A stretch of 64,000 bases of DNA from Takakia lepidozioides (taxonomy: Eukaryota; Plantae; Bryophyta). This document shows, piece by piece, positions 34,966 through 64,000 of the stretch. Location of the stretch: contig CM060731.1 of NCBI GenBank assembly GCA_030704615.1, forward strand, positions 64,976,001 through 65,040,000, read 5' to 3'. The position numbers and the translations under genes are program-made. The notes beneath the pieces are model-generated. The model had not been told where the DNA came from, did not search any database, and saw only the letters and a program-made list of their open reading frames with translations. Numbering within the stretch: position 1 is the stretch's first letter; each line of letters starts with the position of its first letter.

Positions 34966-35558
34966 CTGCGGTCTGGGAGACCTCAACGACGCTACCAAAC
35001 AAACAAACAAACGCCTCCCTTCATATATTGATAACATATTGTACATACATATTGAACTTTATGTACAACAGCGAGCCTAGAGTGAGCGCATGAAGAGGGA
35101 GGCTCGGGTATATTTTGTGGAAGGGCCGGGGTTTGGGGGCAGGTGATACACCACAGTTGGGTGTGGCAATGGCTTACATGGCAGGTGGTCTGCACGGGAT
35201 GCAGCAGAGTTCAATATGACAGTGGTGTCTCTGAAAAATAAGAGTATATGGAAGGTGAGAAAAACTTAAATGCCAAGACCCAGGGTAAAAGAAAGCCTCT
35301 GGGCTGCTCAACGCCTCCCTCCCTGATCGTTTTCAGAGACCACTCTACAATCCCCAGACTGCAAACATAAGCTGCGTTAGCATCTGTGTAAGTCTGGACA
35401 TGTTCGTTGTTCCTCATCGTGTAGAGCCCAATGGAGCCCAAAACAACTTGCATGAATGTTGCTGAAAGCTCACTAGCACCCCTCAGTAAAGGACTTTGTC
35501 AAAATGTTGATGCTGTCGGATTTTCGAGCACAAACGTCTACCTTGGAGCACGGAGCAG

Positions 35559-40600: not shown

Positions 40601-41123
40601 TGAACAGGATGCCGAGACGTATGTGTTGCTATCAAACATCTATGCTGCAGCTGGCAGGTGGGATGATACTGCAACGGTGAGAAGAATGATGAAGGTCAGA
40701 GGGGTTAGAAAGGAGCCAGGTCGCTGCTGCATTGAGGTTGGCAACAGGGTGCACACCTTCGTTGTAGATGACAAATTGCATCCCAAAATTAAGGAAATCC
40801 ATGCTGAGCTGAGAAGATTGTCTGGGCAGATGAAGGAAGCGGGGTATGTGCCTGACACGCGCTTTGTATTGCATGATGTGGGGGAGGAGGAAAAGGAATT
40901 TTCTCTTTGCCACCACAGTGAGAAGCTGGCCATTGGTTTTGGGCTGATCAGCACAACCCTTAGGACGCCTCTCCGTCTCATCAAGAATCTTCGAGTGTGT
41001 GGTGACTGCCACACCTCCACCAAATTCATCTCAAAGATTGTTGGCCGAGCAATTGTTGTACGGGACGCTAACCGCTTTCACCACTTTGAAGATGGGATTT
41101 GTTCTTGTGGGGATTACTGGTGA
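35891..41123 (+). CDS. PDF-motif x3 - PLS-PPR (26 motifs) - E1-E2-DYW protein (locus 2); model join(35891..35921,36071..36153,36344..36482,36629..36723,36902..37049,37197..37291,37593..41123), ~1373 aa
   Basis: The final exon is an uninterrupted ORF with L,S + 7 P-L-S triplets + P2-L2-S2, a PG box (KEPGRCCIEV), the HSEKLA...CGDCH zinc deaminase signature and a terminal DYW. All upstream exon phases are compatible. The PPR-DYW part is certain; the 5' exons and start codon are inferred. Confidence 0.85.
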
Positions 41124-42059
41124 AAGGATGTTTTCTTGGAAAGATGCAAGTGTCTTGCTTCATTCATTGATCTGTGTAGCTACTCATATCATCCACCATT
41201 TCCTGGGAATATTGACCTACTGTTGAGTGCATTTCCTGTGGCGTATGCACAGGAAATGATAGTGGGTCTACCCAGCATAGGTGGGAAGTCAACCCATAAT
41301 TGCACTTGACTGAAGGGGGGAATTTTGACCAACTCTGGTGATAGCAGAAGGAAATCAGAGCTGTCCTAATTATGGGTTTGGGTCGTGGAGCTTCTCCAAA
41401 GTGGATACGGTTTGTAATGAGCTTGACTAGAGGGGCAGCCCCGTGCACAAGTGTATTCAGCATCTTATGTGTGGACATGTTTGTATGTTTCTCATGGTGC
41501 TGCTTCAGAGAGCTCTCTTGACTAACCTGCATGAATGCTGTCGAAAGCTAGCCCTAACCCACGAAGATCCAATCCCATGGTTGAGGCTTGAAAGTTCACA
41601 TAGTGATTGTAATGGTATTTGGGTATTCTTCTATTTATTGATGCGTCATGGCTCCCTCACACTTAACATTGGGTTGTGCATGTTGGAGTTCAAGGTTGGG
41701 GGGACAGAGTCCACCTACTCCACCTACTTCAGAACACAATTGCTATAGTTCGAAAGCAGATTTTCAAGCATATGAAACAAGTGTGCATAGATTCAGATAC
41801 TGCCAGTGTACAGGGAAGCAGTGCCAGTGGCTGGCTTGACTCCCAGTGTTCTCAATTACTACTGGAGCTGCCCATCTCAAACAAGCTGAAAGCTCTCCTA
41901 AAATCCACTTTAAGATCTTAACCCAGGTCCCAGGTCCCATGGTAGGTTGGTTGCCAGCAAAGCATTTTATCCTAAGTGAAGTGGCGGTTAACATAAGACA
42001 AGCCAATGGCTAATAAGAGAAATTCATAAGCTGTAACAGCCCGTCTTGTTCCAACGGTA

Positions 42060-42860: not shown

Positions 42861-44758
42861 CCTACATGTCATCTGCCCTATGGTCTATTTGGTTCAGACA
42901 AATTCCTACGTGTCATCTCATCTGCCCTAATGTCGATTTTGATTTTTCCTCCAGCGACCAGGGTAAGGTGCATAGCGTCGCGACCCTCGATTCCTCAAAT
43001 GCAGAGTCAGTCACCATCCCAAGCTGAGCAACTTACTTTTTTTGTCGCTAGTGTCTAGTAGAGACATGCTCTATGATCTCTAAGGTCCAGAGCTTTTGCA
43101 GAGTGCCTAGTACTACTCATTCTTGTGCGGAAACCAGTCAAATTACGAATTTATAGATGAAGTTCAAGACAACTAATCAACCAGCATTTGTTGCTGGCCA
43201 GGATTTCAGCGGATACCCGATCTTGTGACAGTCTTTGCAAAGTGCTTGTATGTCTGCAGCTGTGGTCCAAGGAAGAATGCAACACCATCGAGCAGCCCCT
43301 GAACTTTCACTAGCTTGTATGTGCAGCTTTTCCCTGTGATTAACCTGGAAAAGCGGCGTATTCGTAAATTTCGTGTTTGATGTGTTCTCTTCATTCTCCA
43401 GTATTTACATCCTGGGCTGTTGCACTGGGCTGTTTACCAAAACTTGTAGTACCGTGAATGTTTTCAGTAGCAAGCATTACGCGAGTTGCTGTTGTGCTGG
43501 GTAAGCCGATGTCGCTGCTCTTGGCAACATCATGCTGTCCAAATTAAGTGTTAAAAAGGTTTGTGACAAATTAGTCCCTGGGCATGACCCCTGTACACTA
43601 CTTACCTATTTGTGCTGTACTGTGGAGTTGCGCAGAACATGGGCTTGCTTCTGGCGTAAGCTTTGTACAAATGCCAGTTCTGACATGTCCTACCAATTGG
43701 TTTACCTTGTTTCCCTGTTTATGAAGGGGGTTGGGTGATGGATGCATAGGCATACTCAGGAGGGCTTGCGGCATCAGGAATAGCCACATCTCTTCTACGA
43801 ATGATTACTAAAGTGGGTTGTGGAGATGCAAATTCTGGCCTCTGGAAAGGTGCCTGTAAGTGTTTGTATGCCTAAGCTTTGCTCCTCATACATGTGTGGA
43901 GTGGCTTGAGAGCATATGCTGTAGGTTTCGTAGGAGGCACAGAAAGGAATCAGCCACCATGTAATATCGCGTGTGTGCATGCATGCAGTGACCTTCTTTG
44001 GAACAGCTGCGGCCAGTGAACTGGTTGGTGTGGTGCTTTAACCTGTTGTGTTCCCACGTCTGCGAGTGGTAAAGGCATTCCGCCTTTCTGCATCACAGCA
44101 GGGTTCCTTAACTTCTGGATGACCTGGCTGCTGTTGGTGCGCAAGGTGATCTCAAGGTGCTTCCTTGTTCCCTCGATAGCCTCATAGGATGTTTTTGAAA
44201 AAGCAAAGACTGATGTGGACTGGCATTTGAGTTTCACTAGTTCTGCTTTTGTCTCTTGCTTCAGAATTTCTTTCGTTTTTACTTCTGAGGGCTCATTCAT
44301 GTATGGTTGGGAGGGTGGCAGGATGCAGAAGCTGGTAAACCACCGCTAGTTAGTCAAGGGTTCCATCCACGAGAAACATACAAACATGTCCAAATGTAAG
44401 ATGCTGTCACACTTGTGCACAGGGCTGCCCCTCTAATCAAGCTCATTAAAATTCATATTCACTTCCATCTTCAAGCTTTGGAGAAGCTCCACCACCCAAA
44501 CCCAGAATTAGGACAGCACTCTGATTTCCATCCACTGTCACAAGAGTCAGTCCAATATCACCCCTTCAGTCAAGTGCAATTATGGGTTCACTTCCCACCA
44601 ATGCCGGGTAGCCCCACTACCATTTCCCGTGGATATGCCACAGGAAATGCACTCAACAGTACATGGTCAATACTCTCGGGTAATGGTGGATGATCTGAGT
44701 AGCTACACAGATCACGGAATGAAGCAAGACACTCGCATCTTTCCAAGAAAACATCCTT

Positions 44759-47700
44759 TCACCAGTAATCCCCACAAGAACAAATCCCATCTTCAAAGTG
44801 GTGAAAGCGGTTAGCGTCGCGTACAACAATTGCTCGGCCAACAATCTTTGAGATGAATTTGGTGGAGGTGTGGCAGTCACCACACACTCGAAGATTCTTG
44901 ATGAGACGGAGAGGCGTCCTCGGGGTCGTGCTGATCAGCCCAAAACCAATGGCCAGCTTCTCACTGTGGTGGCAAAGAGAAAATTCCTTTTCCTCCTCCC
45001 CCACATCATGCAATACAAAGCGCGTGTCAGGCACATACCCCGCTTCCTTCATCTGCCCAGACAATCTTCTCAGCTCAGCATGGATTTCCTTAATTCTGGG
45101 ATGCAACTTGTCATCTACAACGAAGGTGTGCACCCTGTTGCCAACCTCAATGCAGCAGCGACCTGGCTCCTTTCTAACCCCTCTGACCTTCATCATTCTT
45201 CTCACCTTTGCAGTATCATCCCACCTGCCAGCTGCAGCATAGATGTTTGATAGCAACACATAAGTAGTGGCATCCTGTTCATCCCACTTGAGGATAGATG
45301 TTGCCGCACGTTCAGCCATCTCCACATTGCCATGGATTCTGCAGGCACCAAGCAAGGCCTTCCACACCACAACATCTGGATTCATTGGCATTTTATTAAT
45401 CAAGTCCACTGCCTCATCCAGTTGTCCCGCACGTCCAAGAAGGTCCACCATACAGCCAAAGTGCTTTACTGTCGGAGTGACACCATGATCTTGACTCAGG
45501 GAATCAAAGTAGCGTCTTCCTTCATTCAGTAGGCCAGTGTGGCTGCATGCAGAGAGAACACATATAAAGGTGATACTGTCCGGCTTCAAGCCGTTCTTTT
45601 GCATTCCTTCAAATAGTTGCAGGACCTCCCTATGACAACCATGCTGGGCATATCCTGCGATCATCGCGTTCCACGACACCACATTTCGTTCAGCCATCTT
45701 GTCAAACACTCCCTTTGCATCCTCGATGGACCCACATTTGGCATACATGTCCACTAGGGTATTGTTCAGAATCACATCTGGTACAATTCCAGCTTTCGCA
45801 ATGCAACCATGCACCTCTTTGCCCTTTTCCAGGGCTGCCAGGCTTGCACAAGCATTGCAAACGCACACAAACGTGATGCGGTTGCACTTCACCCCTTCCC
45901 CCATCATTTGCTCATAGGTCTCCAAGGCCTCCATCCCGCGCCCCTGCTGTGCATACCCTGCAAGCATCGCGGTCCACGACACCACATCTCGTTCAGCCAT
46001 AGTGTTGAACACTCCTTTCGCATCCTCAACGCTCCCACATTTGGCATACATGTCCACCAGGGCAGTGTTCAGGATGACATCTGGTACAATTCCAGATTTG
46101 ATGATGTCACCATGCACCTCTTTGCCCTTTTCCAGGGCTGCCAGGCTTGCACAAGCATTGCAAACGCACACAAACGTGATGCGGTTGCACTTCACCCCTT
46201 CCCCCATCATTTGCTCATAGGTCTCCAAAGCCTCCATCCCGCGCCCCTGCTGTGCATACCCTGCAATCATCGCGCTCCATGACACCACATCTCGTTCAGC
46301 CATAGTGTTGAACACTCCTTTCGCATCCTCAATGCTCCCACATTTGGCATACATGTCCACCAGGGCAGAGTTCAGAATGACATTGGGTACAATTCCAGCT
46401 GTGACAATGTCACCATGGACCTCTTTGCCCTTTCCCAGAGCTGTCAGGCTCGCACATGCATTGCAAATGCACACGAACGTGATGTGGTTGGGCTTCACCC
46501 CTTCCCCCATCATTTGATCATAGATCTCCAAAGCCTCCATCCCACGTCCCTGCTGTGCATACCCTGCAAGCATCGCGTTCCACGACACCACATCTCGTTC
46601 AGTCATAGTGTTGAAAACTCCCTTCGCATCCTTAATACACCCACATTTGGCATACATGTCCACCAGGGCAGTGTTCAGAATGACATTGGGTACAATTCCA
46701 GCTTTGACGATGTCACCATGGACCTTTTTCCCCTTTTCCAGGGCTCCCAGGCTTGCACACGCATTGCAAACACAAACAAATGTGATGTGGTTGGGCTTCA
46801 CCCCTTCGCGCAGCATTTGCTCATAGGCCTCCAAAGCATTCCTTCCACACCCATGCTTGGTAAATCCTGCCAACAATATATTCCACGTGATCAAAGATCG
46901 TTGAGGCATTCTGTTGAACACTTGGTGAGCATCCATGATGCTCCCGCACTTAACATACATGTTGACAAGGGTGTTGAGTAGAAAAACATTTGGCGTGAAT
47001 CCACTTTGGATAATGTGAGTGTGCACCTGCTTTCCAGCTTCCAGACCTTTCATCTTGATGCACTTGAGCAAGAGACAGACATACGTATCTGAATCTGCTG
47101 AAATGCCTTCTTGGTTTAAAGTCTGTAGAGCCTCTTTCAGTCTGCCTGCCTCACAAAGCATCTTAACATGCCCAGAAGTGCCAGAAGAGGCATTGTGGAC
47201 TCCCTCTCTTGATCCTCTTTCAGAAGCTGTGGTCATGGTTGAGGTACCTGATTTTATCAACTGTGCCGCTGCAGCAGCTGCCTTTAGTTGACCATCTACC
47301 CATGCAGGTTTCTTGTAGCTATTGATCCACAGGGAATCGTAGGTAATCTTGTGCTTGAAATCTGGCCCTCTTGGATGAATCTGGACCCACACTCTATCCC
47401 TGCTCCTTCAGCTATCACTGCCTCTGCACAAATCATGCATACATCCTTGCCTTGCTGCTAGCAGCTGACAATGACAGACTAGACTTGTTCGAGGAAACAC
47501 CCAACTCAACTTATCACACTAGTTCCTATACTCAATTGCATCTGCTACTCTTTGTAATCCAACAGGCATTCACCTTTTTGCCTCGATTGTCCCACCATTG
47601 ACTGGGGTCAAAAAAGTATTCATTCCACAGCTTCTCCTCGTCTGTGTTGCCTGTTTCTGGATACCTTCCTGTTGTCACATTGGCAGTATCATGTCAAAGT

Positions 47701-49518
47701 CACTCCAAACTATCAAAGATTCACTCAACCAGCTAACTTGCAGAATTCAACATGAAAATTTAGGGCCGATTCTGATAAGAGGGAAAAACAGGGTGAAACG
47801 TGTTGAAGAAGGTGCCTTCATTAGCAGTGCCTGATTTTGTCAATTGTGCCGCTGCTGCTGTGGCTTCCAGTTGACCATCTACCCATGCAGGTTTCTTGCA
47901 GCTACTGATCCACAGGGAGTCATAGGTAATCTTGTGCTTGAAATCTGGCCCTCTTGGATGAATCTGGACCCACCCTCCTATCCCTGCTCCTTCAGCTATC
48001 ACTGCCTCTGCACAAATTATGCATAGATCCTTGCCTGGCAGCTGATAATGACAGCCTAGATTTGTTCTAGGAAACACCCAACTCAGCTTATCACACTAGT
48101 TCCGTCTGCTACTCTCTGTAATCTAACAGGCATTCACCTTTTTGCCTCGGTTGTCCCACCGTTGACTGGGGTCAGAAAAGTATTCATTCCACAGCTTCTC
48201 CTCATCTTTGTTACGTGTTTTTGGATACTTTCCTGTTGTCACATTGGCAGTATCAGGTCGAAGTCACTCCAAACTAGATTCACTCAACCAGATAACTTGC
48301 AGAATTCAACATGGAAATTTAGGGCCGATTCTGATAAGTGGGAAAAACAGGGTGAAATGTGTTGAAGAAGGTGCCTTCATTAGCAGTGCCTGATTTTATC
48401 AAATGTGCCACTGCTGCTGCGGCTTCCAGTTGACCATCTACCCATGCAGGTTTCTTGTAGCTATCCGTCCACAGGGAATCGTATGTAATCTTGAGCTTGA
48501 AATCCAGCCCTCTTGGATGTATCTGGACCCAAACTCTATCCCTGCTCCTTCAGCTATCCATGCTCTGCACAAATCATGCATACATCCTTGCCTTGCTGCT
48601 AGCAGCTGACAATGACAGCCTAGATTTGCTCTAGCAAACAAACCAACCCTACTTATCACACTAGTTCCTCTGCTGGCTTCTCACCTTTTTGCCTCGATTG
48701 TTCCACCCTTGACTGCGGTCGGAAACATATTCATTCCAGAGCTTCTCCTCGTCTCTGTTATCTGTTTTTCGATACTTTCCTGTTGTCACATTGACAGTAA
48801 CATGTCAACATCACTCCAAAACCACCATAGATCCACCAACGAGCTAACTTGCAGAATTCAACCTGAAAATTTAGGGACGACTCTGATAGCAGCGAAAAAT
48901 ACGCTAAAATGTCTTGAAGAAGTAGCAGTGCCTGGTTCTATCAATTGTGCTGCTGCCGCTGCTATTTCTACCCACACAGGTTTCTTGTAGCTATTGATCC
49001 ACAGGGAATCAGAAGTAATCTTGTGTTTGAAATCCGGCCCTCTTGCATGAATCTGGACCTCTATCCCTGGTCCTTCAGCTATCCCTGCCTGTGTACAAAT
49101 CATGAATACATCCTCAGCCCTGCTGCTAGCAGCTGACACTGACGGCGTGAAGTTCTTCCAGCAAACACCCCAACCCTACTTATTACAGTAGTTCCAATTC
49201 TGAATTGCATCTGCTTCTCTCTGTAATCCAGCAGGCATTCACCTTTTTGTCTCCATTGTCCCACCACTGACTGGGGTTGGAAAAGTGTTCATTCCAAAGC
49301 TTCTCCTCATCTCTGTTATCTGTTTTTGGATACTTTCCTGCTGCCACATCGGCAGTAACTTGTCAAAGTCACTCCAAACCACCACAGATCCCCCATACGG
49401 GCCAACTTACAGAATTCAGTGTGCAAATTCAGGGCCGAGTCTGATAAGAGGGCAAAACAGGCTGAAATAGGTCGAAGAAGAAGGTGCCCTCACCACATTG
49501 TCCTTGAACCTGTGTCAT
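44759..49518 (-). CDS. PDF-motif x4 - PLS-PPR (17 motifs) - E1-E2-DYW protein (locus 3); exons 49518-49488, 49337-49243, 49052-~48932, 48779-48685, 48522-48375, 48232-48138, 47963-47816, 47668-47574, 47380-44759
   Basis: The final exon is an uninterrupted ORF with L,S + 4 PLS triplets + P2-L2-S2, E1/E2 and an intact DYW (HSE, CxxC). Upstream 95-nt and 148-nt exons are in phase. The usual donor of the third exon is deleted (~48925), so the 5' part is uncertain. Confidence 0.82.
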
Positions 49519-50178
49519 GACCCATGGAGGAATTGACCGACCATCAACCCAAAAGGACCTCTTGTGTTTTGAGTCTGTAGTCAGGTCATGTCGGATTGGT
49601 CTGTGAGAACCACCACGGTGCAGCTGAGCAGGTATAGATTGAAACACGGCCTGCTAAGACCAAGCTGACTCTCCCAAGAACCTTGTAAACATCAGGAAGA
49701 ATACAAAATCATGGTACTAACAGGAAGAGCCAAGAGCCCACATCTGCAGGATGGACAAACTTCTTCACATCATACATTAAGAGAAAGCCACACCTTGCGA
49801 TTGCGGTTGTCCCACCATCGTGAAGGATCTTTAAAAAACTCATGCCAGCTCTGCTCCGTGCTCCAAGGTAGACGTTTGTGCTCGGAAATCCGACAGCATC
49901 AACATTTTGACAAAGTCCTTGACTGAGGGGTGCTAGTGAGCTTTCAGCAACATTCATGCAAGTTGTTTTGGGCTCCATTGGGCTCTACACGATGAGGTAC
50001 AACGAACATGTCCAGACTTACACAGATGCTAACGCAGCTTATGTTTGCAGTCTGGAGATTGTAGAGTGGTCGCTGACAACGATCAGGGAGGGGAGGCACT
50101 GAGCAGCCCAGAGTCTTTCTTTTACCCTGGGTCCTGGCAATGAGTCTTTTACCCTGGACCAGCGTTGGGCGGGTATTA

Positions 50179-52788
50179 CTTTTCTTTTCTTTTTTTTCTT
50201 TTTTTTCTTTCTTTCTTTCTTTTTCTTTTTCTTTTTCTTTTTTGAACAGGGGACTTTGCCCTGGAAGCTTTATTTATGTTTATTTTTGGTGGGGAAAAAA
50301 GTAAAACCCCTAAAAGTACCATGAAGGCACACACACCATAGACAATGAAGGATGAACCGACCTCCTATTGGAGAATTCCAAAAAATTAGGGCATTATGCC
50401 TAATGTAGTGCTGAGTGGTGGGGAGAGCATCTCACCCAGGGAGCTTCTTGCAAGCAAGAGTCTAAGAGCAGGTGTAGGTTTTGCCAGCAGAGGTAGAGTC
50501 CTAGCGAAGAACTTGATGATGACTACTACTCTACTGCTATCGATTTGCTCTTGGAATGTCAACGGAACTTGAGTCTCGCAGCTGACTTGATGTGGCGCCA
50601 GTTAATGTCTTTGTAAAATTCGGGGGAGAGTGTGGATGGGCGCCCTGAGCCCCCTCCAAGCGACTGGTAGGTTGGCAGCCCAGTTGCATTTGCTTGGTGA
50701 AGTGGTAGTGCAGATGTGCCCTTGCCTGCCCAAGAACGATCTGAAGTCTGCATGCAGGTTGGCTGCTTGTTGAGGGTGTTTGTTCATTTTTGCACACAGT
50801 TTCACCCATGCCTTTCTAGCATCAATCTACAAATCCCAGAATATGCGAGCTAATACTGTGGATAATGACAGAGCTTCACCAGAGAGTGACCAGGAGCAAC
50901 GTACTCTCCATAGTTGTCATAGTGTAGAAACGCGGAGGCTCTCAAAGACTGGGCAATCAATGGATTTCGATTTGGAAGAGGTGTCATAGTTTAAAAGTAG
51001 TCTGAGTGGCGTTTGTGGTTGGGTATCCCAGATGGTGTAAAAAGCTTTTATGATTCTCCAGATTGATTCTGAGCCCTGGCACGAGAGGAGGCAGTGTTCT
51101 AAAGATTCTAGCACTCATGTGGAGCAGCATGAGCATAAAAGAACGTCCTAGAATTGAAGCCATTCTCCTACCTTGAGCACTTTATTCGCAATTTGCCATA
51201 GGAATGTAGACATTTTTGCAGATTTGGTCTTGCTCCAGATATTGCTCCAAATTGCTTTCAAGTTTTCATTGGCAAAGCCATAGTACTGCCATTTAACATT
51301 CCACTTGGAGTGGAGAGGGTTAAGTTTGGCTAGTGTTTTGCGGGCTTTTTTTGCTAGGTAGTTGAAGAAGGGGACTTGGGATCAGCCAAAGGACCATGTC
51401 CACTCCTTAGGGTCAAATTGCAGGTCTGCCAGCAACCTTCCTAAAATCCAGATAAAGTTATTTGCTGCAAGCCAGATGTGTAGAGGTAAGGTGGGATCAG
51501 GTTGAGGGTTCATATCTTTTGTCGGGTACGACCAGCAGCATATCCTAACCGGGGTATAAGATGGGGTAATCAATGGGTCGCTCGCTATTCAAAGACAAAG
51601 CCATAGAAACAGGGTCAATATTGAAGGGAAATCCTGTCAGGGTATGATCGGATCTGTGGAGAATGAAAAGAACAATTAGCTTATTGTGGATGATCCCAAG
51701 AGTCCAATAAAGGGATTGGGGATTTGAAGGACCAGTCTGGAGATTCGAGAGCCAAGTGGGGGGGATGGAGGCTGTGATTTGAGGCAATCCAGCCTTGGCC
51801 CTGTTTTTGCCTACAGATAGTGCAATGATATCTGCCTCCTTAAAGCCGTTTTTGCACCATATATCTTTGAGCTGGCAGATCCCCTTGTGATCCCACGAAG
51901 ACCATCTTCTGGCCTGACAGCGTTGGGTTGTGGTGGTTTGGCTGTTGTTTAAGAAGATGTGCTGTTGGGCAGTCTCTTCGAATGTTTGAGGTTCTTCTTT
52001 TTTAAGGAGAGGCCTGAGTTTGGCCCATGCTTATCAAATAGTTGTCCACAATGGTGAGCCTACGAGCTTGTGTTTGAAGCCTTGCACTGCCCATCTGAAG
52101 GAGGGGCCCTATGATGAGTTTTGAAGGGGTGATGCGGCCAGGATGTTTCCTGTCACGAGAATTTCCAGCATCCCCCCTCTAGGCCAAAGAATTTAGGGAC
52201 CCATTTTCCTAACGGAGCGGCAATTTGTATCTCCGGATCGATGACTCCCAGACCACCATCCTTTTTGGGAAGGCATATTTGTCTCCAGGAGACTTGGGGT
52301 CTTCTCCAGCCTAGCAATGATGATTTAGCTCCCTAGATAAAGTTACGAAGTAGGGTTCTAACCTGTTTGATCTGGGAGGTGTTTGATCGCCAGGACAAGG
52401 AGAAGTACCAAATGCCTGCAAAGAGGACTTGATTGACTGCCAGCGCTCTACATGTGATGGAGAGACGCTTTGATCCCCAAAAGGTTAGTTTTCTTTTGAG
52501 TTTTGTCATAGTAGGTGCGAACCGTTGGTTGTCAATGAGGTTGATGCCGAAGGTATAACCCAGGTAAGTGGTTGATTGGCCCGGTTGAAGCCAAGAAAGG
52601 CCTAAGGAGGAGCCCCAAGATGGAGAGGCTCCAATGCATGATTTGTTGATATCTCCGGCCAGAATTGCACACATTTTGGCCCAGTTGACTTTGAATCCTG
52701 AGGCCTGGCAGAATGTCTGAAGGGTGTTTGTAGCATTGCTCAGGTTGGCTGGATTGGCTTGGGTAAACGGTCATTAACGACCGCAGAC
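50179..52788 (-). mobile_element. LINE (L1-like) 3' portion, degenerate
   Basis: A-rich tail on the minus strand (T-run 50179-50243). ORF2 remnants include FCQASGFKVNWAK, TYLGYTFG, VSWRQICLPKKDGGLGVIDP, IWSKTKSAKMSTFLWQI and ESLEHCLLSC. It breaks off in the RT domain exactly where the LTR starts. Confidence 0.88.
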
Positions 52789-53295
52789 TGTAACGGCTCT
52801 TTTGAGCATAGTATAAAAAGACTGCACGCAACTTAGAAGGGGCGATATGAGTATCAGTGATCAATGTGTATTCAGTATATACTTCAGTGATGATATGACG
52901 GACTCTGAAGTAAAGCCAGGCTATTCGAAGTATCTCTGTGTAGAGTGAACGTGAGATGGAGATAATGTGTATTATGCGAAAACGTGAGATGATGAGAATG
53001 TGTATCATTTCAGGATAGTTCTTGTTTGCCTTGACTACCAATTGCTTTACAACTTTAGTCTTTTTGATTAAGATCTTTCATGCCAAAGAGACTGTAAGTT
53101 GAGCTCAATCAATAGGATTAAGCAGCATGCATGGAGATGAATTCATACGATGTTCATGGTTTAGCTATCCTTAAAACAATTACTTCGTAATCGTTTCTGA
53201 AAGCCTACCATCGGACAACCTCTTTTGCATGTCTTAGGAAATGGGCAGTAGTGCTAATAGCCTGTTTTGTCTAAGTCATAAACCAGCGGTTAACA
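52789..53295 (+). repeat. 5' LTR (TGTAAC...TTAACA, ~507 bp) followed by a PBS-like TGGCGACCATACTGGGGA
   Basis: TG...CA termini, with a TGG-initiated PBS-like tract immediately after 53295. The partner LTR is outside the window. Confidence 0.7.
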
Positions 53296-54338
53296 TTTGG
53301 CGACCATACTGGGGACTAACGGTATGTTGAGTTCAAGAGTACTCAAAGAAAGATGGTTACTCAGTGATTTCTTGAAATCACAACAGAACGAGTCAACGGA
53401 AACAAAGGAATGGAAACATTCCTGGAAAAATTTCATGGCTTACCAAGAGCAATACAACAGAAGATCTTTCTTTCAGTCGCGAAAGAAGATGACAAATGGG
53501 GATTGAAGGGAGGAGTGATCAGTATTATACGAGCACCTTGGGAATGTAGGATTAGAAGTGAAGAGTGGTTGTCTCGTCTAGCTTTATTGATTACTCTAAT
53601 CCCAATCAGAAAAGTTTGCTACACTAGTTATATTTTCAGATAAGGATGTTCAAATTATGAATATTGTCACACGATCATAGAAGTAGTGGAGTACTGGATA
53701 CCCAAAGACTTATTGCAAGTCAGATACACTGAAAAAGACAGATGGTATTATTGTGCCCATTAAAAGTTTGGTGATCAATCAGTAAAAAGGAAAATTAAGT
53801 CGTAATACGGATTCTTGCAAGATAGGATAAATCTTGAAGAAAGGGTAGAGACCACTATAAATTTTCTTTACTGACATACCAAGACTGTTTAAAGGGTGCC
53901 GAAAAGGAATTCTACATATGATGTGGGAATGAATGAGGAAAATAAAGATAAAGCTAAGGTGAACGAATAGAGAAATATGCTGCAGAAAGGGAGGCTCGGT
54001 TAAGAGAAGAGTTCCCAGAACTACAGAACTTGAATATTATTCAAGGTGAGACATCAAGACAAATTGACAGTGATAAACCAGAAGATCAGGAAATCGGATC
54101 GGTGGGAAGTGGGAACACTACACCAGAAGAAGTTGCCAATAATGTACCACAAGAAAGATTTGAAGGACCTTCTCCAGTAACAAGTCCAAATCGAGGTTTT
54201 GCTAAGAAAGATTTGAGAACATTCTGAGAGAAGAAGGTGAAAGAAGTGAAAGCACTTCTCCAGAAAGAATAACCAGAATTGCACTCAAAGCTTTTAAAGA
54301 TTCATTAAGCTTAGTAGGGACAACACCTGGAAGACGAC

Positions 54339-57300
54339 CCTGGGGGGTGCACTCTTTATAAAATGTCCGTATCACGTGCGTTCGCCGCCTAATAGAAAAA
54401 CCCCTTGTATACGGGTCCTTGGATCATTTATACCCCCTCTGTACATACATTTTGAAGATTATAAAACCCCCTCCTGTAAATATATAGAAATTTGTAAATT
54501 TTAAAAAGTACCCCCTTATGTATGTATATTTCCCTTTTCAATAATTCAAAAATACCCTCAAATATGTATATGTATATTTTTATATTATATCAAGTTTATT
54601 TATTTAAAAATAGAATAAAATCTAGTAAATTAATTAAAAAAATGTTTCCCTCAATAAAACTTGCTGTGGAATCTCACTTTGAACAATAATCAGATGCAGA
54701 GAGGAAAAGGACATTGTCAATGCCCGATGTGCAAGAGGCATGAAGAAAGTTTCCATTTTCTGATATACAGTCCTGGGTATTTTCATCAGAGAGTGACCCT
54801 CTTGAAGACCATCAAGACCTAGTCACTGCACCTTTGTTCATCAACTAGGACAGTTTCTGGACTTGTTCTACAGTTTTAACCTTCGCAAGGTCCAATTATT
54901 TTCAAAACCTACTGTTGAGAATTCCTCTCCAAAAAGAGATTTCGTGCGCCTTTGCTGCCACTGTTGGAGTCCAACCTGACTCGCAGCTGACAGAGTTCAA
55001 TACATTCAATTAGGTGACAAACATTTCATTTCACCAATACTCCCCACAAGAACAAACACCATTTTGGAAGTGGTGAAAGCGGTTTGCATCCCGTACAACA
55101 ATCTCTTGCTTAGCTATCTTTGAGATGAATTTGGTGGCTGTGTGGCAATCACCACACATCTGAAGATTCTTGATGATCCCCAAAGACATCCCAGAGGGTG
55201 TGTTGATAAGCCCAAAAACAATGGCCAGCTTCTCATTGTGTTGGCAAAGAGACGATTCTTTAAGCTCTTCCTCAACATCATGCAATGCAAAGCACAGGCT
55301 TCACCCCTTCGCACATCATTTGCTCATAGGTCTCCAAAGCCTCCATCCAGCGCCCTTGCTGTGCATATCCTGCAATCATCGCACTCCATGACAGCACATC
55401 TCGTTCAGCCATACCGTCGAACACTCCCTTCATACATGTCCACGAGGGTATTGTTCATAATCACATTTGATACAATTGCAGATGTGACAATGTCACCATG
55501 GACCTCTTTGCCCTTTTCCAGAGCTAACAGGCTTGCACACGCATTGCAAATGTACACAAACGTGATGTGGTCGGGCTTCACCCCTTCCCCCATCATTTGA
55601 TCATAGGTCTCCAAAGCCTCCATATCACGTCCCTGCTGTGCATACCCTGCAAGCATCGCACTCCACGACACCACATCTCGTTCAGCCATGGAAACTCCCT
55701 TTGCATCTTTAATGCACCCACATTTGGCATACATGTCCATCAGGGGAGTGTTCAGAATGACATCTGGTACAATTCCAGCTTTGACAAAGTCACCATGGAC
55801 CTCTTTCCCCTTTTCCAGAGCTCCCAGGCTTGCACACGCATTGCATCCTGCCAACATTATATTCCACGTGATCAAAGATTGTTGAGGCATTCTGTTGAAC
55901 ACTTGGTGAGCATCCATGATGCTCCCACACATAACATATATGTTGACAAGGGTGTTGAGTAGAAAAACATTTGGCGTGAATCCACTTTGGATGATGTGAG
56001 TATGCACCTATTTTCCAGCTTCCAGACCTTCCATCTTGATGCACTTAAGCAAGAGACAGACATACATATCTGAATCTGGTGAAATGCCTTGTGATGTGGT
56101 TAGGCTTCACCCCGTCCCCCATCATTTGCTCATAGGTCTCCAAAGCCTCCATCCCGTGCCCCTGTTGTGCATACCCTGCAAGCATCACGTTCCACGACAC
56201 CACATCTCGTTCAGCCAAAGTGTTGAAAACTCCCCTCACATCCTTAACGCACCCACATTTGGCAAACATGTCCACAAGGGTAGTTTCAAGATGACATCTG
56301 GTACAATTCCAGCTTGCTCCCAGGCTTTCACACGCATTGCAAACACAAACAAATGTGGTTGGGCTTCACCGCTTTGCACATCATTTGCTCATATGTCTCC
56401 AAAATGTTCCTACCACACCTATGCTTGGTAAATCCTTTCAACATAATATTCCACGTGATCAAAGATCATTGAGGCATTTTGTTGAACACTTGGTGAGCAT
56501 CCCTGATGTTCCGGCACTTAACATACAGGTTGACAAGGGTGTTGAGTAGAAAAACATTTGGCGTGAATCCACTTTGGATAATGTGAGGGTGCACCTGCTT
56601 GCCAGCTTCGAGACCTTCCATCTTGATGCACTTAAGCAAGAGACAGACATACATATCTGAATCTGCTGAACTGCCTCTTTGTTTTAGAGTCTGTAGAGCC
56701 TCTGTCAGGCTGTCGCACAAAGTATCTTCACATGCCCAGAAGTGCCAGAGGAGGCATTGTGGACTCCCTCTCTTGATTCTCTTTCAGAAGCTGTGGTCAT
56801 GGTTGAGGTGCCTGATTTTATCAATTGTGTCGCTGCAGCTGCTGCCTTTAGTTGACCATCTACTTTCTTGTAGCTATTGATCCGCAAGGAATCAGAAGTA
56901 ATCTTGTGTTTAAAATCGACCTCTTGGATGAATCGTGTTCCACAACACCACCTCGTTCAGCCATAGTGTTGAACACTCCCTCCGCATCCTCAGTGCTCCC
57001 ACAATGGCATACATGTCCACAAGGGTATTGTTCATAATCACATCCGGTACAATTCCAGCTTTGGTGATGCAACCATGCACCTCTTTGCCCTTTTCCAGGG
57101 CTACAGGCTTGCACACGCACTGCAAACGCACACAAACATGATGTGGTCGAGCTTCACCCCTTCCCCCATCATCTGCTTTCAGGTCTCCAAAGCCCCATCT
57201 CGCGCTCCTGCTCTGCACACCCTGCAAGCATCGCGTTCCACGACACGACATCTCATTCACCCATAGTGTTGAACACTCCCTTGGCATCCTCAATGCTCCC

Positions 57301-60080
57301 ACATTTGGCATACATGGCCACCATAGCAATGTTCAGGATGACATCTAGTACAATTGCAGATTTGATGATGTCACCAGGGATCTCTTTGCCCTTTTCCAGG
57401 GCTGCCATACGCACTGCAAACGCACACAAACGTTATGTCGGCGGCCTTCACCCCTTCCCCCATCATTTGCTCAAAGGTTGGAGCCTCCATCCCGCACCCC
57501 TGTTGTGCATACCCTGCAAGCATTGCACTCCACGACACCACATCTCGTCCAGCCATAGAGTTGAACACTGATCCCTTGGCATCCTCGATGCACCCACATT
57601 TGGCATACATGTCCACCAGGGTAGGGGCAGTGTTCATAATGACATCTGGTAATCTGATAGGCATTCACCTTTTTGCCTCGGTTGTCCCACCATTGTCTGG
57701 GGTCAGAAAAATATTCATTCCACAGCTTCTCCTTGTCTCTGTTACCTGTTTCTAGATACTTTCCTGTTGTCACATTGGCAGTATCATGTCAAAGTCATTC
57801 CAAACTACCCTAGATTCACTCAACCAATTAACTTGCAGAATTCAACATGAAAGTTTAGGGCCGATTCTGATAGGAAGAGACAACAGGGTGGAATGTGTTG
57901 AAGAAGGTGCCTTCATCAGCAGTGCCTGATTTTATCAATTGTGTTGCTGCTGCTACGACTTCAAGTTGATTATCTACCCATACAGGTTTCTTATATCTAT
58001 CCTTCCACAGGGAATCATCGGTAATCTGGAGCTTGAAATCTGGAGCTTGTCCTTGACCTTGTGTCATGACCCGTGGAGGATTTGACCGACCATCAACCCA
58101 AAAGGACCTCTTGTGTGTGCTGCTTGTGTCTTGTAGTCATACTTCCCCTAAACAATCCAACCCAGGCTATGACAATGACCAAAATACCAAGCCCAACCTG
58201 ATGGCAAACCTCCCTCATTCAAAGCCTGATTTTCTGGCGAGTGTGACCACATGCAACATTGTCAAATCCTAGAGAGCCTACTTGTAGAAGTCATGTGAAC
58301 GAGCATTCATGCAGAAAAAAAGTTTATGAAGAGTCTACGGATGTGACGGACTCAGTGCTCTTTCTGCGCTTTAAGTGCAGGGGCGACAACAAGGTCGGCC
58401 ATGCCATAATACTCCCAAGACTGTCGACCTGCCTGACCAGCTGTTCGTTGTCATTGCCTTCCTTCTCCACTCCACGGACCAGCGCATCCAAGGGTAAATT
58501 CAGTGTCTTCTGCACATGTGGTACATGTACAACACAATCGGAACTCGTACTCTCGAATATAAGGCAAACCAGTAGACCTGACTCTGTACACAATTGTCCG
58601 ATTTGCAGACATTGCTTCCATATTGCCCTAGAGTGCACGGTGAATAATAGATTGCTTAGGCGTCAAGATGCTTATTCTAGGTATATGTACAGGTCATGAA
58701 TGTGAGAATAACAAGAAATTCATGAAGTTAGACTTACAGCCAGCCAATCACCAATGGCGCGCGATTCTGGAGGTCTTCCAGCTTTCTTGTTTACCTGCAA
58801 ATTGAAAAGCACATGGAAGAAAAGGTCAGGTGTTTAACTAAGAGGAATTCTCTGGTGTTTATCGGAGAAGGAGAGAGCACCTGTTGAAGAGCAGCTTTGA
58901 ACATGGTGCTGCTATTGGGGTTCCATGTAATGCCGTCAGATACCTGGGAGGTGCTTGCCAGTGGCTGGGAAGTTGCTCCTTCGCTCTTGACTGTGGTCAG
59001 CGTCTGAAGCAAGGCTGGAAATGGAGGCTTGGCATTTGTGCTGATGGTTTGGCTGGGAGCTGGCAAGTTGAGCATGTTCAAGAACACAGAGACAAAGATC
59101 AGAAAGCAAGGAAATCAGATTCTTAGTCTGAATTCTATACCTCAAAGACTCCTAACTTGGATGTGACCACACATATTGATCCAGTATCCTGCTCCTGTAC
59201 ATAGGTCTGCAATTCTAGACAGACGATTGCAAGTCGGATTGGTCTGTGAGAACCACCACGGTGCAGCTGAGCAGGTAGAGATTGAAACACGGCCTGCTAA
59301 GACCAAGCTGACTCTCCCAAGAACCTTGTAAACATTAGGAAGAATACCAAATCAGGGTACTAACAGGAGGCAAGAGCCTGCATTTGCAGGATGGACAAAC
59401 TTCTTTACATCGTACCTTAAGAAAACGCCACACTTTGCGATTGCAGTTGTCCCACAAACGTGAAGGATATGCTCCGTGCTGCAAATTCAGGGCCGAGTCT
59501 GATGAGAGGGCAAAACAGGCTGAAATAGGTCGAAGAAGAAGGTTCCCTCACCACGTTGTCCTTGACATTGTGTCATGACCCATGGAGGATTTGACCTCCC
59601 ATCAGCCCAAAAGGACCTCTCTTCTGTGTGCTGCTGGTGTCTGTAGTCAAGTAATGTCAGATTGGTCTTTGAGAACCACCACGGTGCAGCTGAGCAGGCA
59701 AAGATTGAAACGACCTGCTAAGACCAAGCTGACTCTCCCAAGAACGCGGGAGAGGAGGGGAGAGGAGAGGCGAGGAGAGGAGGGGAGGAAAAAGAGAGCC
59801 CACGGTAGGGAAGGGGAGAAAGATCGCGGGGAGAAAAAAAGGAAAAAAAACAAACAAAAAGAATGATCCCGTGATTTAATCCCGCGGTGTATCACGACCC
59901 AAATAACGTCCTTACCACTAGACTACCCTTTAAAACTTAACAACCCCCTCCTGTAATATTATATTTAAGGTGTTTTAAACCCCCCCATGTATGTATAATG
60001 CTGTACATGGGGGGGTTTAAAATACCCCCTCCTGTGCACGCACGTGGCTGGTACATACTGGCTGGAGTGCACCCCCCAGG
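54339..60080. mobile_element. Non-autonomous TIR DNA transposon (Pack-type), 5742 bp, carrying host gene fragments
   Basis: Perfect 16-bp TIRs CCTGGGGGGTGCACTC (54339-54354) and GAGTGCACCCCCCAGG (60065-60080). TSD AAGACGAC at 54331-54338 and 60081-60088. Subterminal ACCCCC(T)CCTGTA-like repeats occur at both ends. No transposase seen. Confidence 0.9.
55031..59744 (-). pseudogene. Scrambled PDF-PPR-DYW pseudogene (locus 4) inside the DNA transposon
   Basis: Out-of-order, frameshifted pieces: PDF exons and introns (57650-58140, 59232-59744), linker/first PPRs present twice (~56090-55860, ~56930-56340), PLS fragments, and a truncated DYW ending CSCGEYW (55031-55290). Confidence 0.9.
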
Positions 60081-60088
60081 AAGACGAC

Positions 60089-62452
60089 TATCATTGGGAC
60101 AAAGAACTCCTAGCTTTGAATCACTGTTTGGAAGACAAACACCAACACCATTCCAGCCAGCAGCAGCGGGACCATCCCAGTTTGGGCAACCAGTTGCACC
60201 AGTTGCACCGATGGCTTTAGCAGCAAACAAAACCAGATCACCATTTCATTTATATGATGGGAAATCTGATCCAGATATCCATCTTAATCAATTTGAAAAC
60301 ATGTGCACCATTTACAATGAAGCAACAGACCAAGAGAAGATCCGACTATTTCCTTGTTCAATGGCCCGGAAAGGCATTGAATGGTTGGCAACCTTCCCAG
60401 CCAATCACTTTGCGAATTGGGCGGATATGAGAGCCGCGTTTCAAGAAAGATATAGATCCAACAAATCCACGTCTGAAATCTTCACATGATTACAGATTCT
60501 GAGACAGAAAAAGAAAGAATTGGTAGTCGACTACCTGGAGAGAATGAAGACTCTGATCAGGAAGCTACCTCAAGCACTAGGGGATGATTTGCAAAAATCA
60601 TGGTTCATCAATGGACTTCATCCTGAATACGTAACCATGGTTACAGTCATGCCTAACAACACTTTGGCTGAAGCAGTAGGGACTGCAAAGAAGTTGGAAT
60701 TGGGATTCCATCAGAGCAGATGCAAAGATTCCAAGGATCCCTTGGAAGAAGAAGACTCTGATGATGAAGAAAAGCCCAAGCAAAAGAAGAAAGAAGTGAT
60801 TGACAAAACCACTTAATTTGGATCAGAAGATAGCAGAGGCTATGAAGAATTTTAAAGATGAAGGGCCACAAAAGGCAACATGGTGTCACAAATGCGGGAC
60901 TGCAGGACACCTGGCAACGGAATGCCATATGAAGGACAAATACTGTGATATTTGTCATATGAACAATCATAATACCAGCCATTGTATTTACAACCAACGG
61001 GCCAAGAAGACTGGGTACACACGAGAGGTGGGGGTACACCAAGTTCAAATCCGACGGGGAGGATCGGACGAACCAAGACGATACAATATGGGTAATCGTT
61101 ATCAGAGGCCACGAGATGAATATCCACCAAGGGATAGGGAACATCAACCCAGAAACAAAGAAAGCACGAGATGCCACAATTGCAAGAAAGAAGGGCACTG
61201 GAAACATGAATGCCAGTTGCGAATCAAGCATGAGGCAGAAGTGGGAAATATGGAAGCCGGACCAAGTGTAGTCGTAAGTGTGGTAACCTCTGTAGTGGAT
61301 ACCCTTGCGGTAACCCGAACTCAGGCCGAGAAACAGAAACCTCCAGATAAGGAGATCAAAGAAGAACGGAAACAATATCCAGAAAGTGCAGCATGGCAGG
61401 AGGAAAAGAGCTTACACCAGGAGGTAAGTAAAGCCATAGCTCAAATGCAAGAGGGGACTCATATACCTTCTGGAGAGCCAACTCCAGATAAGCAAATCAG
61501 ACCAACGATGAAGACCACGAATACAACCACGGAAACAGAATTGGCCGAAGTAATCTGCCAGACCAAGACCCAAATTACCATTGGACAATTATTAAAAATT
61601 GCTCCACACTGCAAAAAAACTTTGTTCCGGGCAATCGAGGCATTGACCCCCACACCAAAACAAAAACCAACACCAGAAGTTTACACGATTAAACCCACAA
61701 CTATACGACAAACTCTCGATTACGACGAAACAATACCCGTAATACAAGTACGTATTGGACGGAAGATGGTAACGGATGTACTCATCGATGGAAGATCCAG
61801 AGTGAATATCATGACAGAAAATATGAAAAAGTCACTAGGATTGGGGCACATGGAACCCGCTCCATTCACAGTACGAATGGCTGATCAACGAAAAGTGCAG
61901 CCATTGGGGATCATCAGACGACTTGCAATAGAAGTAGCAGGACTGGTATACGAAGTATCAGTAACCATTCTCAGAATGGAGGATGTGGCAGAAGGATATT
62001 CGCTACTACTTGGCCGACCATGGTTAACACAAGCCCAATCACACCACGATTGGGGAAGTCAGACTCTCACAATAAAAAAGGGAGCAGAACAAAGCACCAT
62101 CACTACCAAGCAACGAAGTACTATTCCACGAGAGAAACGACCTTATATAGTGGAAGAGTATGATTGGTCCAGTGGACTGTCGGATGAAGAAGAAGCCACA
62201 GTATACGCAGCACATCCACAATTGGAACCTATTGGGCAACTAGTGGTCAAGCATACCACAACAGTAGGATGTCACATGGTGAACACCCAAGGAGAACCAA
62301 ATACTTCGAGAACGGAAGGTTCAGAGGAAGAAGCGATGGACACACCTCAACACCCTGCCCGTTCTATCAAGAAAGGGAAGAAGACATTCAAATCAGTGAA
62401 GTACCTACCACAATTGCAACCATCGGACAAGAAATTGCAGGATGGACAGTAA
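60089..62452 (+). pseudogene. gypsy gag-protease region (stops/frameshifts)
   Basis: YDGKSDPDIHLNQF...LFPCSMARKGIEWL retrotransposon gag, zinc knuckles, and protease-like LLLGRPWL. Confidence 0.88.
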
Positions 62453-64000
62453 CGGAAGAAACTCAATTGATTCAAGTGAATCTGGGAACAGTGGAAGAAC
62501 CACAAATAATACGAGTAAGTGCAGGTCTTGAAGAAACATTTCTACAAGAAGCTACTGCATTATTCACTAAATACAAGGATGTATTTGCCTGGAACTACAA
62601 AGATTTGAAGGGTATACCTTCTAATATCTGTCAACACCGAATTGAATTGGAAGTTGACACAAAACCAATTCGTTAGAACCGTTACAGAATGAACCCCAAC
62701 TATGCAACTAAAGTTTGGGAAGAAATCAAGAAGTTATTGGATGCAGGATTCATATACCCAGTAGAGACACCACAATGGTTATCACCCATTGTGATAGTAC
62801 CCAAGAAAAATGGAAAACTACGAGTGTGTGTGGACTACCGCAAGTTAAACGCAGGAACCAAGAAAGACCCTTTTCCACTACCTTTCACTGAAATAGTGTT
62901 GGACACAGTGGCTGGACATGAGATGTACTCATTCATGGATGGGTTTAGTGGATACAACCAGGTACAGATGGCAGAAGAAGACCGAGAAAAGACTGCATTC
63001 ATCACTGAATGGGGAGCATATGCTTACAAAGTCATGCCATTTGGACTTTGCAATGCACCAGCCACATTTCAACGAGTAGTATCTGAGATATTCAAGAACT
63101 ATCTCAATGATTTTATGCAGGTATTTTTGGATGATTTCAGTGTCTTCGGACAGAAAACCAAACATTTGGCACAGTTAAAACTTTGCCTACAAGCCTGCAG
63201 AAACAATGGAGTAAGTCTCAACCCGGGAAAATGTACATTCTGTGTGAATTCAGGATTATTATTGGGACACATTGTGTGCCAACAGGGAATTCCAGTAGAT
63301 CCAAAGAAAGTGGAGGTTATCCAGAAAATACCACCACCAGAAAATCCCAAGAAACTCAAGAGATTTCTGGGACAGACGAGCTATTATAGAAGGTACATGG
63401 ACAAATATGCTCACAGAGCGGCGCCAGTCTATAGACTACTGAAGCAAGATGCCGAATATTGATGGTCTCCAGCTTGCCAGGAATCATTTGATTCACTAAA
63501 AAAGGCACTCACAGCAGCGCCAATTCTGATAAATCCAAGATGGGATTTACCATTTCATGTACACAGTGATGCATCAGGCATTGCTTTGGGAGCGGTTCTA
63601 GCTCAGAATGTGACAGGCACAATAGATTCACCAATCTATTATGCAAGCAGGTTACTAACAACAGCCGAAAAGAATTATAGCACCACAGAAAGGGAAACAT
63701 TGGCAATGATTTATGTTGTTCAAAAATTTCGGCATTATTTACTTGGCAATCAATTTAAGTTTCTTGTGGATCATCAGGCTCTAGTTCATTTAGCAAATCG
63801 ACCACTAGCTAATGGCAGGGTTGCTCGATGGTTATTATTTCTTCATGAGTATGACTTTGAAGTTGTTCATAAACTAGGGAGATTACATGTTATAGCAAAT
63901 CATCTGTCAAGGATTACTACAGGAGAACCAGCCACGGGGGTAGAGGATCAACTTCCCGATGCATTTCTGTTTGCTGTTCAACCAGAAGCACCAGATGAAG
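62453..64000 (+). pseudogene. gypsy RT-RNase H region (in-frame stops)
   Basis: ORF 62689-63462 carries RT motifs. RNase H motifs follow a stop at ~63460. Confidence 0.9.

Follow-up and report, generated by a model that had tools for sequence, protein, structure and literature searches.

By what route does a gene for a PPR-DYW RNA-editing factor come to lie, intron sequence included, between the ends of a DNA transposon, and did it arrive there as one gene or as an assortment of pieces? This question is raised by a locus in the moss Takakia lepidozioides, spanning positions 54331-60088 (5,758 nt) of a 64-kb stretch of DNA (GenBank assembly GCA_030704615.1, contig CM060731.1, positions 64,976,001 to 65,040,000 of the forward strand), which is referred to here as the window. 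A previous annotation made from the letters alone (the sequence-only reading) described the locus as a Pack-type transposon that had captured a PDF-PPR-DYW gene. We find that the element proper (54339-60080, approximately 5.7 kb) is, as judged from its sequence, very probably a non-autonomous cut-and-paste DNA transposon of the Pack-TYPE kind, i.e., a transposon bounded by terminal inverted repeats (TIRs). The case for this assignment is made by the statistics of the TIRs and of the flanking target-site duplication (TSD), by motifs specific to the ends of the element, and by intron-containing cargo. The superfamilies from which Pack-TYPE elements are known comprise CACTA, hAT, PIF, Mariner, and Mutator (PMC8903248, PMC6379663), and several features that mark such elements were found at this locus, namely TIRs, a flanking TSD, an interior derived from a host gene that is not itself a transposable element, and no transposase coding sequence that could be seen.

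With regard to the ends of the element, the window contains exactly two copies of the 16-mer CCTGGGGGGTGCACTC, one on each strand, which match at 16 of 16 positions; only 0.02 matches to this 16-mer with up to two mismatches would be expected in 64 kb. The octamer AAGACGAC touches both TIRs directly on their outer sides and is identical at 8 of 8 positions. A pair of inverted 16-mers is not rare in itself, as chance alone would produce approximately 0.3 perfect pairs of this kind (within 20 kb) per window, and one could thus propose that no transposon is present at all, i.e., that the inverted 16-mers and the 8-bp repeat arose by chance and that a PPR pseudogene reached this site through segmental duplication. 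We regard this explanation as exceedingly improbable. The window holds 584 perfect inverted pairs of at least 14 nt within 20 kb, nearly all of which derive from two inverted PPR genes, and apart from the CCTGGGGGGTGCACTC pair none of them is flanked by a direct repeat of more than 2 bp; a 16-mer pair together with an exact 8-bp flanking repeat would be expected approximately 4.5e-6 times per window. In addition, a second box, CACGTGCGT, lies exactly 18 nt inside both TIRs, and a 13-mer resembling ACCCCCTCCTGTA (up to two mismatches) has six matches in the window, as compared to 1.1 expected, all of which are located within 200 bp of the ends. PPR-like sequence is furthermore found wholly between the two ends, with retroelement sequence outside them. 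The sequence-only reading had claimed perfect 16-bp TIRs, an 8-bp TSD, subterminal repeats and the lack of a transposase, and each of these claims is borne out; for the last of them, no Pfam transposase domain was found in any tested open reading frame (ORF) of the ends, of the cargo, or of an internal insert (H, described below), with no exhaustive HMMER search made.

The length of the TSD bears on the superfamily to which this element belongs. It had been remarked, correctly, that the direct repeat reaches 9-10 bp if the terminal G's are counted; the repeat then reads GAAGACGAC or GGAAGACGAC, depending on whether the last G or the last GG of the element is assigned to the flank. A TSD of 9-10 bp would point to a Mutator-like element (MULE), a group with TSDs of 9-11 bp, i.e., to a classical Pack-MULE, and Pack-MULEs are the best-known gene capturers (PMC8903248). 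We consider a MULE quite improbable, however, since under the 9- or 10-bp parse the TIRs no longer line up, being shifted by 1-2 nt, while the 8-bp parse aligns them at all 16 positions. Similarity between the two ends also collapses past the 16 bp (43-nt arms are 72% complementary), while MULE TIRs are typically 100 bp or more in length, and the subterminal motifs are not arranged with mirror symmetry. At the target (54323-54338), the pentamer CCTGG, which is also the first pentamer of the element, stands directly 5' of the duplicated octamer; this may reflect chance or a target preference.

We thus place the element in the class with 8-bp TSDs, which comprises hAT and P, and cannot tell which of the two applies; the sequence-only reading had likewise left the superfamily open, and rightly so, as the 8-bp TSD is compatible with either superfamily while termini of the form CC...GG match neither. 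That the element is a "Pack-hAT", i.e., a non-autonomous element mobilized by a hAT transposase, is quite possible, although we would put it at somewhat less than an even chance. The hAT superfamily is the commonest one with 8-bp TSDs in plants, and the short 16-bp TIRs together with asymmetric subterminal repeats are also in line with it; all four left copies of the subterminal motif are on the plus strand, pointing inward, and on the right, three of four copies share this strand, so that the two subterminal regions are not mirror images of each other. Conversely, hAT ends begin with 5'-YARNG and not with the CCTGG found here, position 2 of the TSD is A rather than the T of the weak hAT target preference (nTnnnnAn), a comparison that concerns a single site, and a partner element was not observed. 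For maize and rice, Pack-hAT elements flanked by 8-nt TSDs are on record (PMC8903248). Two of the right motif copies in the present element form a 23-nt hairpin (59969-60026). Membership in the P-element superfamily is a possibility that we hold tentatively; an 8-bp TSD is the rule for P elements too, and the octamer observed falls within the 7-8 bp called for, and the short TIRs and asymmetric motif clusters are in line with P as well, but no feature of the sequence favors P over hAT and the terminus lacks the CA start of classical P ends. CACTA was excluded, as the locus shows neither CACTA termini nor a 3-bp TSD. Merlin was also rejected; its 8-9-bp TSD would fit, but the terminus is CC and not 5'-GG (PMC8101967). 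The Merlin study reported no significant blastp matches in Streptophyta and a single earlier Merlin record, from Selaginella (PMC8101967).

To map the cargo, the element was compared by BLASTN with the rest of the window, and domains were assigned with Pfam, which recognized PPR repeats and a DYW deaminase domain in the cargo ORFs. Sequence derived from a PDF-PPR-DYW gene makes up approximately 63% of the element (about 3.6 of 5.7 kb), at 80-95% identity to the genes in the window, with the remainder made up of H (19%) and of end sequence (18%). The coordinates of all features are collected in the table.

Table. Features of the element and its surroundings, in order along the window (percentages are nucleotide identity to other parts of the window).
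Feature	Position	Strand	Basis or match
Left target-site duplication, AAGACGAC	54331-54338		Identical to 60081-60088; abuts left TIR
Left terminal inverted repeat, 16 bp, CCTGGGGGGTGCACTC	54339-54354	+	One of two matches in the window
Left internal region, AT-rich, no PPR-gene match	54355-55018		Window comparison
Inner box CACGTGCGT	54373-54381	+	Mirrored at 60038-60046; end-to-end alignment
Left subterminal motif cluster (ACCCCC-YYM-TGTA type), 4 copies	54400-54525	+	Motif scan
Piece A: last ~86 codons of DYW deaminase domain and stop codon	55019-55293	-	80-81% to 44749-45021 and 40861-41133; PF14432, 1.2e-38
Piece B: PLS repeats	55297-55845	-	86% to 46190-46768
Piece C: PLS repeats up to N-terminal PPR region	55845-56090	-	95% to 46864-47109
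Piece D: second PLS block, up to 5' end of PPR exon	56091-56934	-	85% to 46479-47381 and 37592-38494
Piece E: third PLS block	56932-57651	-	86% to 45663-46389
Piece F: PDF-motif cassette, two exons with intervening intron and first ~20 nt of next intron (predicted)	57649-58043	-	88-90% to 47554-47948 and 36917-37311
Piece G: 5' region of gene	58047-58139	-	88%
H: 1,090 bp between G and I, no match	58140-59229		Window and Pfam comparison
Piece I: first exon region and ~10 nt of 5' untranslated region; 22-nt deletion at putative start codon	59230-59468	-	91% to 49587-49828
Piece J: partial duplicate of G and I	59480-59745	-	89%
Right internal region: (GGAGA)n tract, then right subterminal region	59746-60064		
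Right subterminal motif cluster, 4 copies	59943-60036		Motif scan
Right terminal inverted repeat, 16 bp	60065-60080	-	Pairs with left TIR
Right target-site duplication, AAGACGAC	60081-60088		Abuts right TIR
Host: decayed long terminal repeat (LTR) retrotransposon coding region (gag, zinc knuckle, RVT_1)	60211-63462	+	Pfam

Piece F provides the evidence as to how the gene was copied. Its gapless alignment to both genes in the window covers two exons together with the stretch that separates them; this intervening sequence holds an in-frame stop and ends with an AG acceptor. Beyond a GTGAAT donor, the alignment extends into the following intron for approximately 20 nt before similarity breaks and a PLS repeat starts. 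While the exon and intron labels used here are predictions from ORF boundaries and splice-site-like dinucleotides, the non-coding stretch in piece F is retained at the same identity as the exons (88-90%), which indicates that the gene was copied as DNA, as the sequence-only reading had proposed.

The arrangement of the pieces speaks to whether the element collected one gene or many scraps. All nine gene-derived pieces are in the sense orientation on the minus strand, an outcome with a probability of approximately 0.4% under independent captures, and they run from the 3' end of the gene on the left to its 5' end on the right in roughly collinear order, with three back-steps that fall inside repeated regions. 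Given this shared orientation and the rough collinearity from the 5' untranslated region (UTR) to the stop codon, a single nearly complete gene copy that was later scrambled by deletion and partial duplication among the PLS and PDF repeats fits the data better than does piecemeal acquisition. The earlier description of the cargo as many fragments, including introns, stands as far as the fragments and the intron are concerned, while many separate captures would be the less fitting explanation for them.

At the left edge of the cargo, similarity begins at the stop codon; as the three paralogues in the window likewise part from one another right at the stop codon, the sequence beyond this edge, which would otherwise appear to be the element's own, may hold the 3' flank of the source gene, and the left internal region (54355-55018) is thus either one or the other. 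On the right, piece I extends approximately 10 nt upstream of the putative ATG, which was itself lost in the 22-nt deletion. GA/CT-rich low-complexity tracts are found beyond the 5' end of the cargo gene (59749-59870) as well as upstream of the intact minus-strand gene in the window (50140-50334), and their presence at both loci raises the possibility that the cargo includes part of the source gene's promoter region.

The largest interruption of the cargo is insert H, which sits exactly between pieces G and I; these two regions are contiguous in the genes of the window, and piece J retains the junction between them uninterrupted. Approximately 6 nt were lost at the H junction, and H has neither a TSD nor TIRs of its own. 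No match to H was found within the window, either as DNA or in translation, or in Pfam, and the two ORFs in H gave no match in a protein atlas and low recognition scores.

Judged on its reading frames, the cargo is dead and cannot encode an editing factor. There are 36-40 stops over 3.1 kb in each sense frame, all three frames are needed to cover the cargo when the protein of the neighboring gene is used as a TBLASTN query, and of the DYW domain the N-terminal half is missing. A 200-aa cargo ORF that crosses a mosaic junction retrieved only ordinary PPR proteins, at no more than 53% identity, in a word-index search of a protein collection that does not hold this genome.

The source of the cargo is a family member other than the two neighboring genes, or else the capture is older than their local duplication. 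This conclusion is based on the observations that each piece is equally similar to both neighbors (e.g., 85.4% and 85.2% for piece D against the plus-strand gene at 35.3-41.2 kb and the minus-strand gene at 44.7-50.1 kb, respectively, which are 82-98% identical to each other) and that an 8-nt insertion common to pieces G and J is absent from both neighbors. The claim that a PDF-PPR-DYW gene was captured is supported, while these observations speak against the neighboring genes as its source. As to timing, the internal duplicates within the cargo differ by 3-11%, whereas the paired TIR and TSD positions are identical at 24 of 24; this weakly suggests that the cargo had already been rearranged before the insertion took place and hence that the element moved with its cargo.

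The element interrupts a decayed Ty3/gypsy-type retrotransposon. To the right of the element, on the plus strand, lie a zinc-knuckle ORF, an RVT_1 reverse transcriptase, and a Retrotrans_gag domain that is split by an in-frame stop (60487-60489) into halves that correspond to profile positions 2-45 and 54-96 and that score 15.2 and 20.2 bits, each alone under the 24.1-bit cut-off. More frame breaks occur between the gag stop and the reverse transcriptase; together with the in-frame stop, these indicate that the host retroelement is dead.

Removal of the element and of one TSD copy yields a joined target that reads ...CCTGGAAGACGACTATC... and encodes GTTPGRR followed, across the junction, by LSLGQRTPSF. 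The restored gypsy frame that had been reported could thus be reproduced, but it carries less weight than was assigned to it, as on the left side the joined frame stays open for no more than 44 codons, none of them a Met, while the first Met of the recognizable gag (60211) is located 42 codons to the right of the junction. The short, Met-less left frame and the downstream position of the first Met suggest that the insertion may have hit the leader and not coding sequence; as weak evidence, the restored frame adds little to the TSD. The 44 left-side residues gave no match when searched apart from the right side, no tRNA-Met primer-binding site that would place the insertion within the retroelement was found, and no other copy of the host retroelement for an empty-site check is present in the window.

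Further to the left, ORFs at 52333-53041 on the minus strand resemble the C-terminal portion of a LINE-type (non-LTR) reverse transcriptase, although the one tested had no Pfam match; the left flank may thus not be uniform retroelement sequence. An ORF within the element (54661-54819) with a C-x-C...H pattern was considered as a remnant of a LINE zf-RVT domain and was dropped, since it had no Pfam match at E values up to 10.

Taken as a sequence of events, the locus may have formed as follows. A transposase encoded elsewhere would recognize the 16-bp TIRs, the CACGTGCGT boxes 18 nt inside them, and the clusters of ACCCCCTCCTGTA-like 13-mers, would excise the element, and would re-insert it through an 8-bp staggered cut. 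The place of the transposase gene is occupied by a single PDF-PPR-DYW gene, copied as DNA and lying on the minus strand, from the 5' UTR to the stop codon and with its introns; deletions and partial duplications have since scrambled this copy, and the 1.1 kb of H DNA now interrupts it. The gene was probably picked up before the present insertion event, in which case the element moved with its cargo. The insertion itself hit the leader or the 5' part of gag of an already decaying Ty3/gypsy-type retrotransposon and left the perfect 8-bp duplication. With regard to the capture itself, two related elements may have flanked a gene and their outer ends may subsequently have been used together; alternatively, template switching during repair after excision could have brought the gene in. 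Tandem insertion followed by joint mobilization is the capture model that has emerged from Pack-TYPE work (PMC8903248, PMC6379663).

Several points weigh against the interpretation of this locus as a Pack-TYPE transposon, and against the history proposed for it. The interpretation rests on one copy, with no second copy, autonomous partner or empty site seen in the window, and the boundary between the element's own sequence and its cargo cannot be set without sibling copies. The termini, 5'-CCTGG...CCAGG-3', match the usual start of neither hAT (YARNG) nor P (CA...) elements. The interpretation does not account for the 19% of the element that is represented by H, and the view that the cargo predates the insertion depends on 24 perfect TIR and TSD positions set against approximately 9% divergence between duplicates (P of approximately 0.1), a comparison that is suggestive only. 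With regard to relatives, a second copy of the element ends was not found in the window, an exact-pattern scan for the TIR, an 18-nt spacer, and CACGTGCGT gave 0 matches in a public metagenome collection that does not hold this genome, and a literature search for the TIR string returned no papers. No Rfam families or tRNAs were found in or near the element.

The two neighboring PDF-PPR-DYW genes, at 35317-41217 on the plus strand and 44665-50092 on the minus strand, form a tail-to-tail inverted duplication. Their 5' regions (35317-35934 and 49475-50092) are 98% identical, and their PLS arrays, at 82-94% identity, are shifted against each other by whole 303-nt triplets. Within the minus-strand gene, residues 98-135 of the ORF at 44759-47392, in the N-terminal PPR region, match the Pfam family Transpos_assoc (PF13963) at 37 bits (cut-off 27.7); as the match contains no separately significant stretch, it probably arises spuriously from a PPR helix pair.

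The locus is relevant to the question of how PPR genes have multiplied in early land plants. A 2026 survey of RNA-editing factors attributed this expansion to retroposition, and reported 2,016 PPR genes in T. lepidozioides, mostly arising by dispersed duplication and with limited signatures of retroposition (PMC13386178). For grasses and Arabidopsis there is ample documentation of TIR transposons that have captured genes, while the capture literature cited here contains no bryophyte or RNA-editing-factor cargo; in particular, a 2026 review of gene capture by transposable elements mentions no moss, bryophyte, or PPR case (PMC13317346). An intron-containing, nearly whole PPR-DYW gene in a DNA transposon indicates that a DNA-level route exists in the Takakia genome. 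It is a further and, in our view, unlikely proposition that DNA transposons of several superfamilies, including the family of the present element, have served as a regular DNA-level route for copying PPR-DYW genes in this lineage, with some copies whole, intron-containing, and functional on arrival. If true, this would help to explain why approximately 2,000 PPR genes in Takakia are mostly dispersed and carry limited signatures of retroposition (PMC13386178), and the element described here would be a decayed witness of whole-gene transduplication rather than a collector of scraps. Dispersal and shuffling of editing-factor modules by such capture, which the sequence-only reading had put forward as a possible route, is hypothetical where working modules are concerned. 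A single dead copy shows no function, and its value is that of one data point toward a genome-wide count.

Among known systems, the element most readily invites comparison with the Pack-TYPE elements of rice, maize, and Arabidopsis, with which it shares TIRs and a TSD, the lack of a transposase, an intron-bearing host-gene interior, and rearranged non-coding cargo; it differs from them in that its host is a seed-free land plant, in that its cargo amounts to essentially a single entire PDF-PPR-DYW gene, where theirs consists of short fragments from several genes, and in its unusual CCTGG...CCAGG termini. Ds-type hAT elements (Ac/Ds) likewise combine short TIRs with an 8-bp TSD and carry a transposase-binding-type motif in many copies within subterminal regions of approximately 200 bp, with an arrangement of motifs that differs between the two ends; in the present element, by contrast, the terminal nucleotides depart from the hAT rule, and no matching hAT transposase was identified. 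Non-autonomous P elements also combine an 8-bp TSD and short TIRs with internal binding sites near the ends, but classical P ends are 31 bp in length and start with CATG. Finally, the retroposition model of PPR expansion shares with this locus the presence of dispersed PPR-DYW copies near transposable elements (PMC13386178); here, however, introns have been kept inside a DNA transposon, which argues that this gene moved as DNA and not via RNA.

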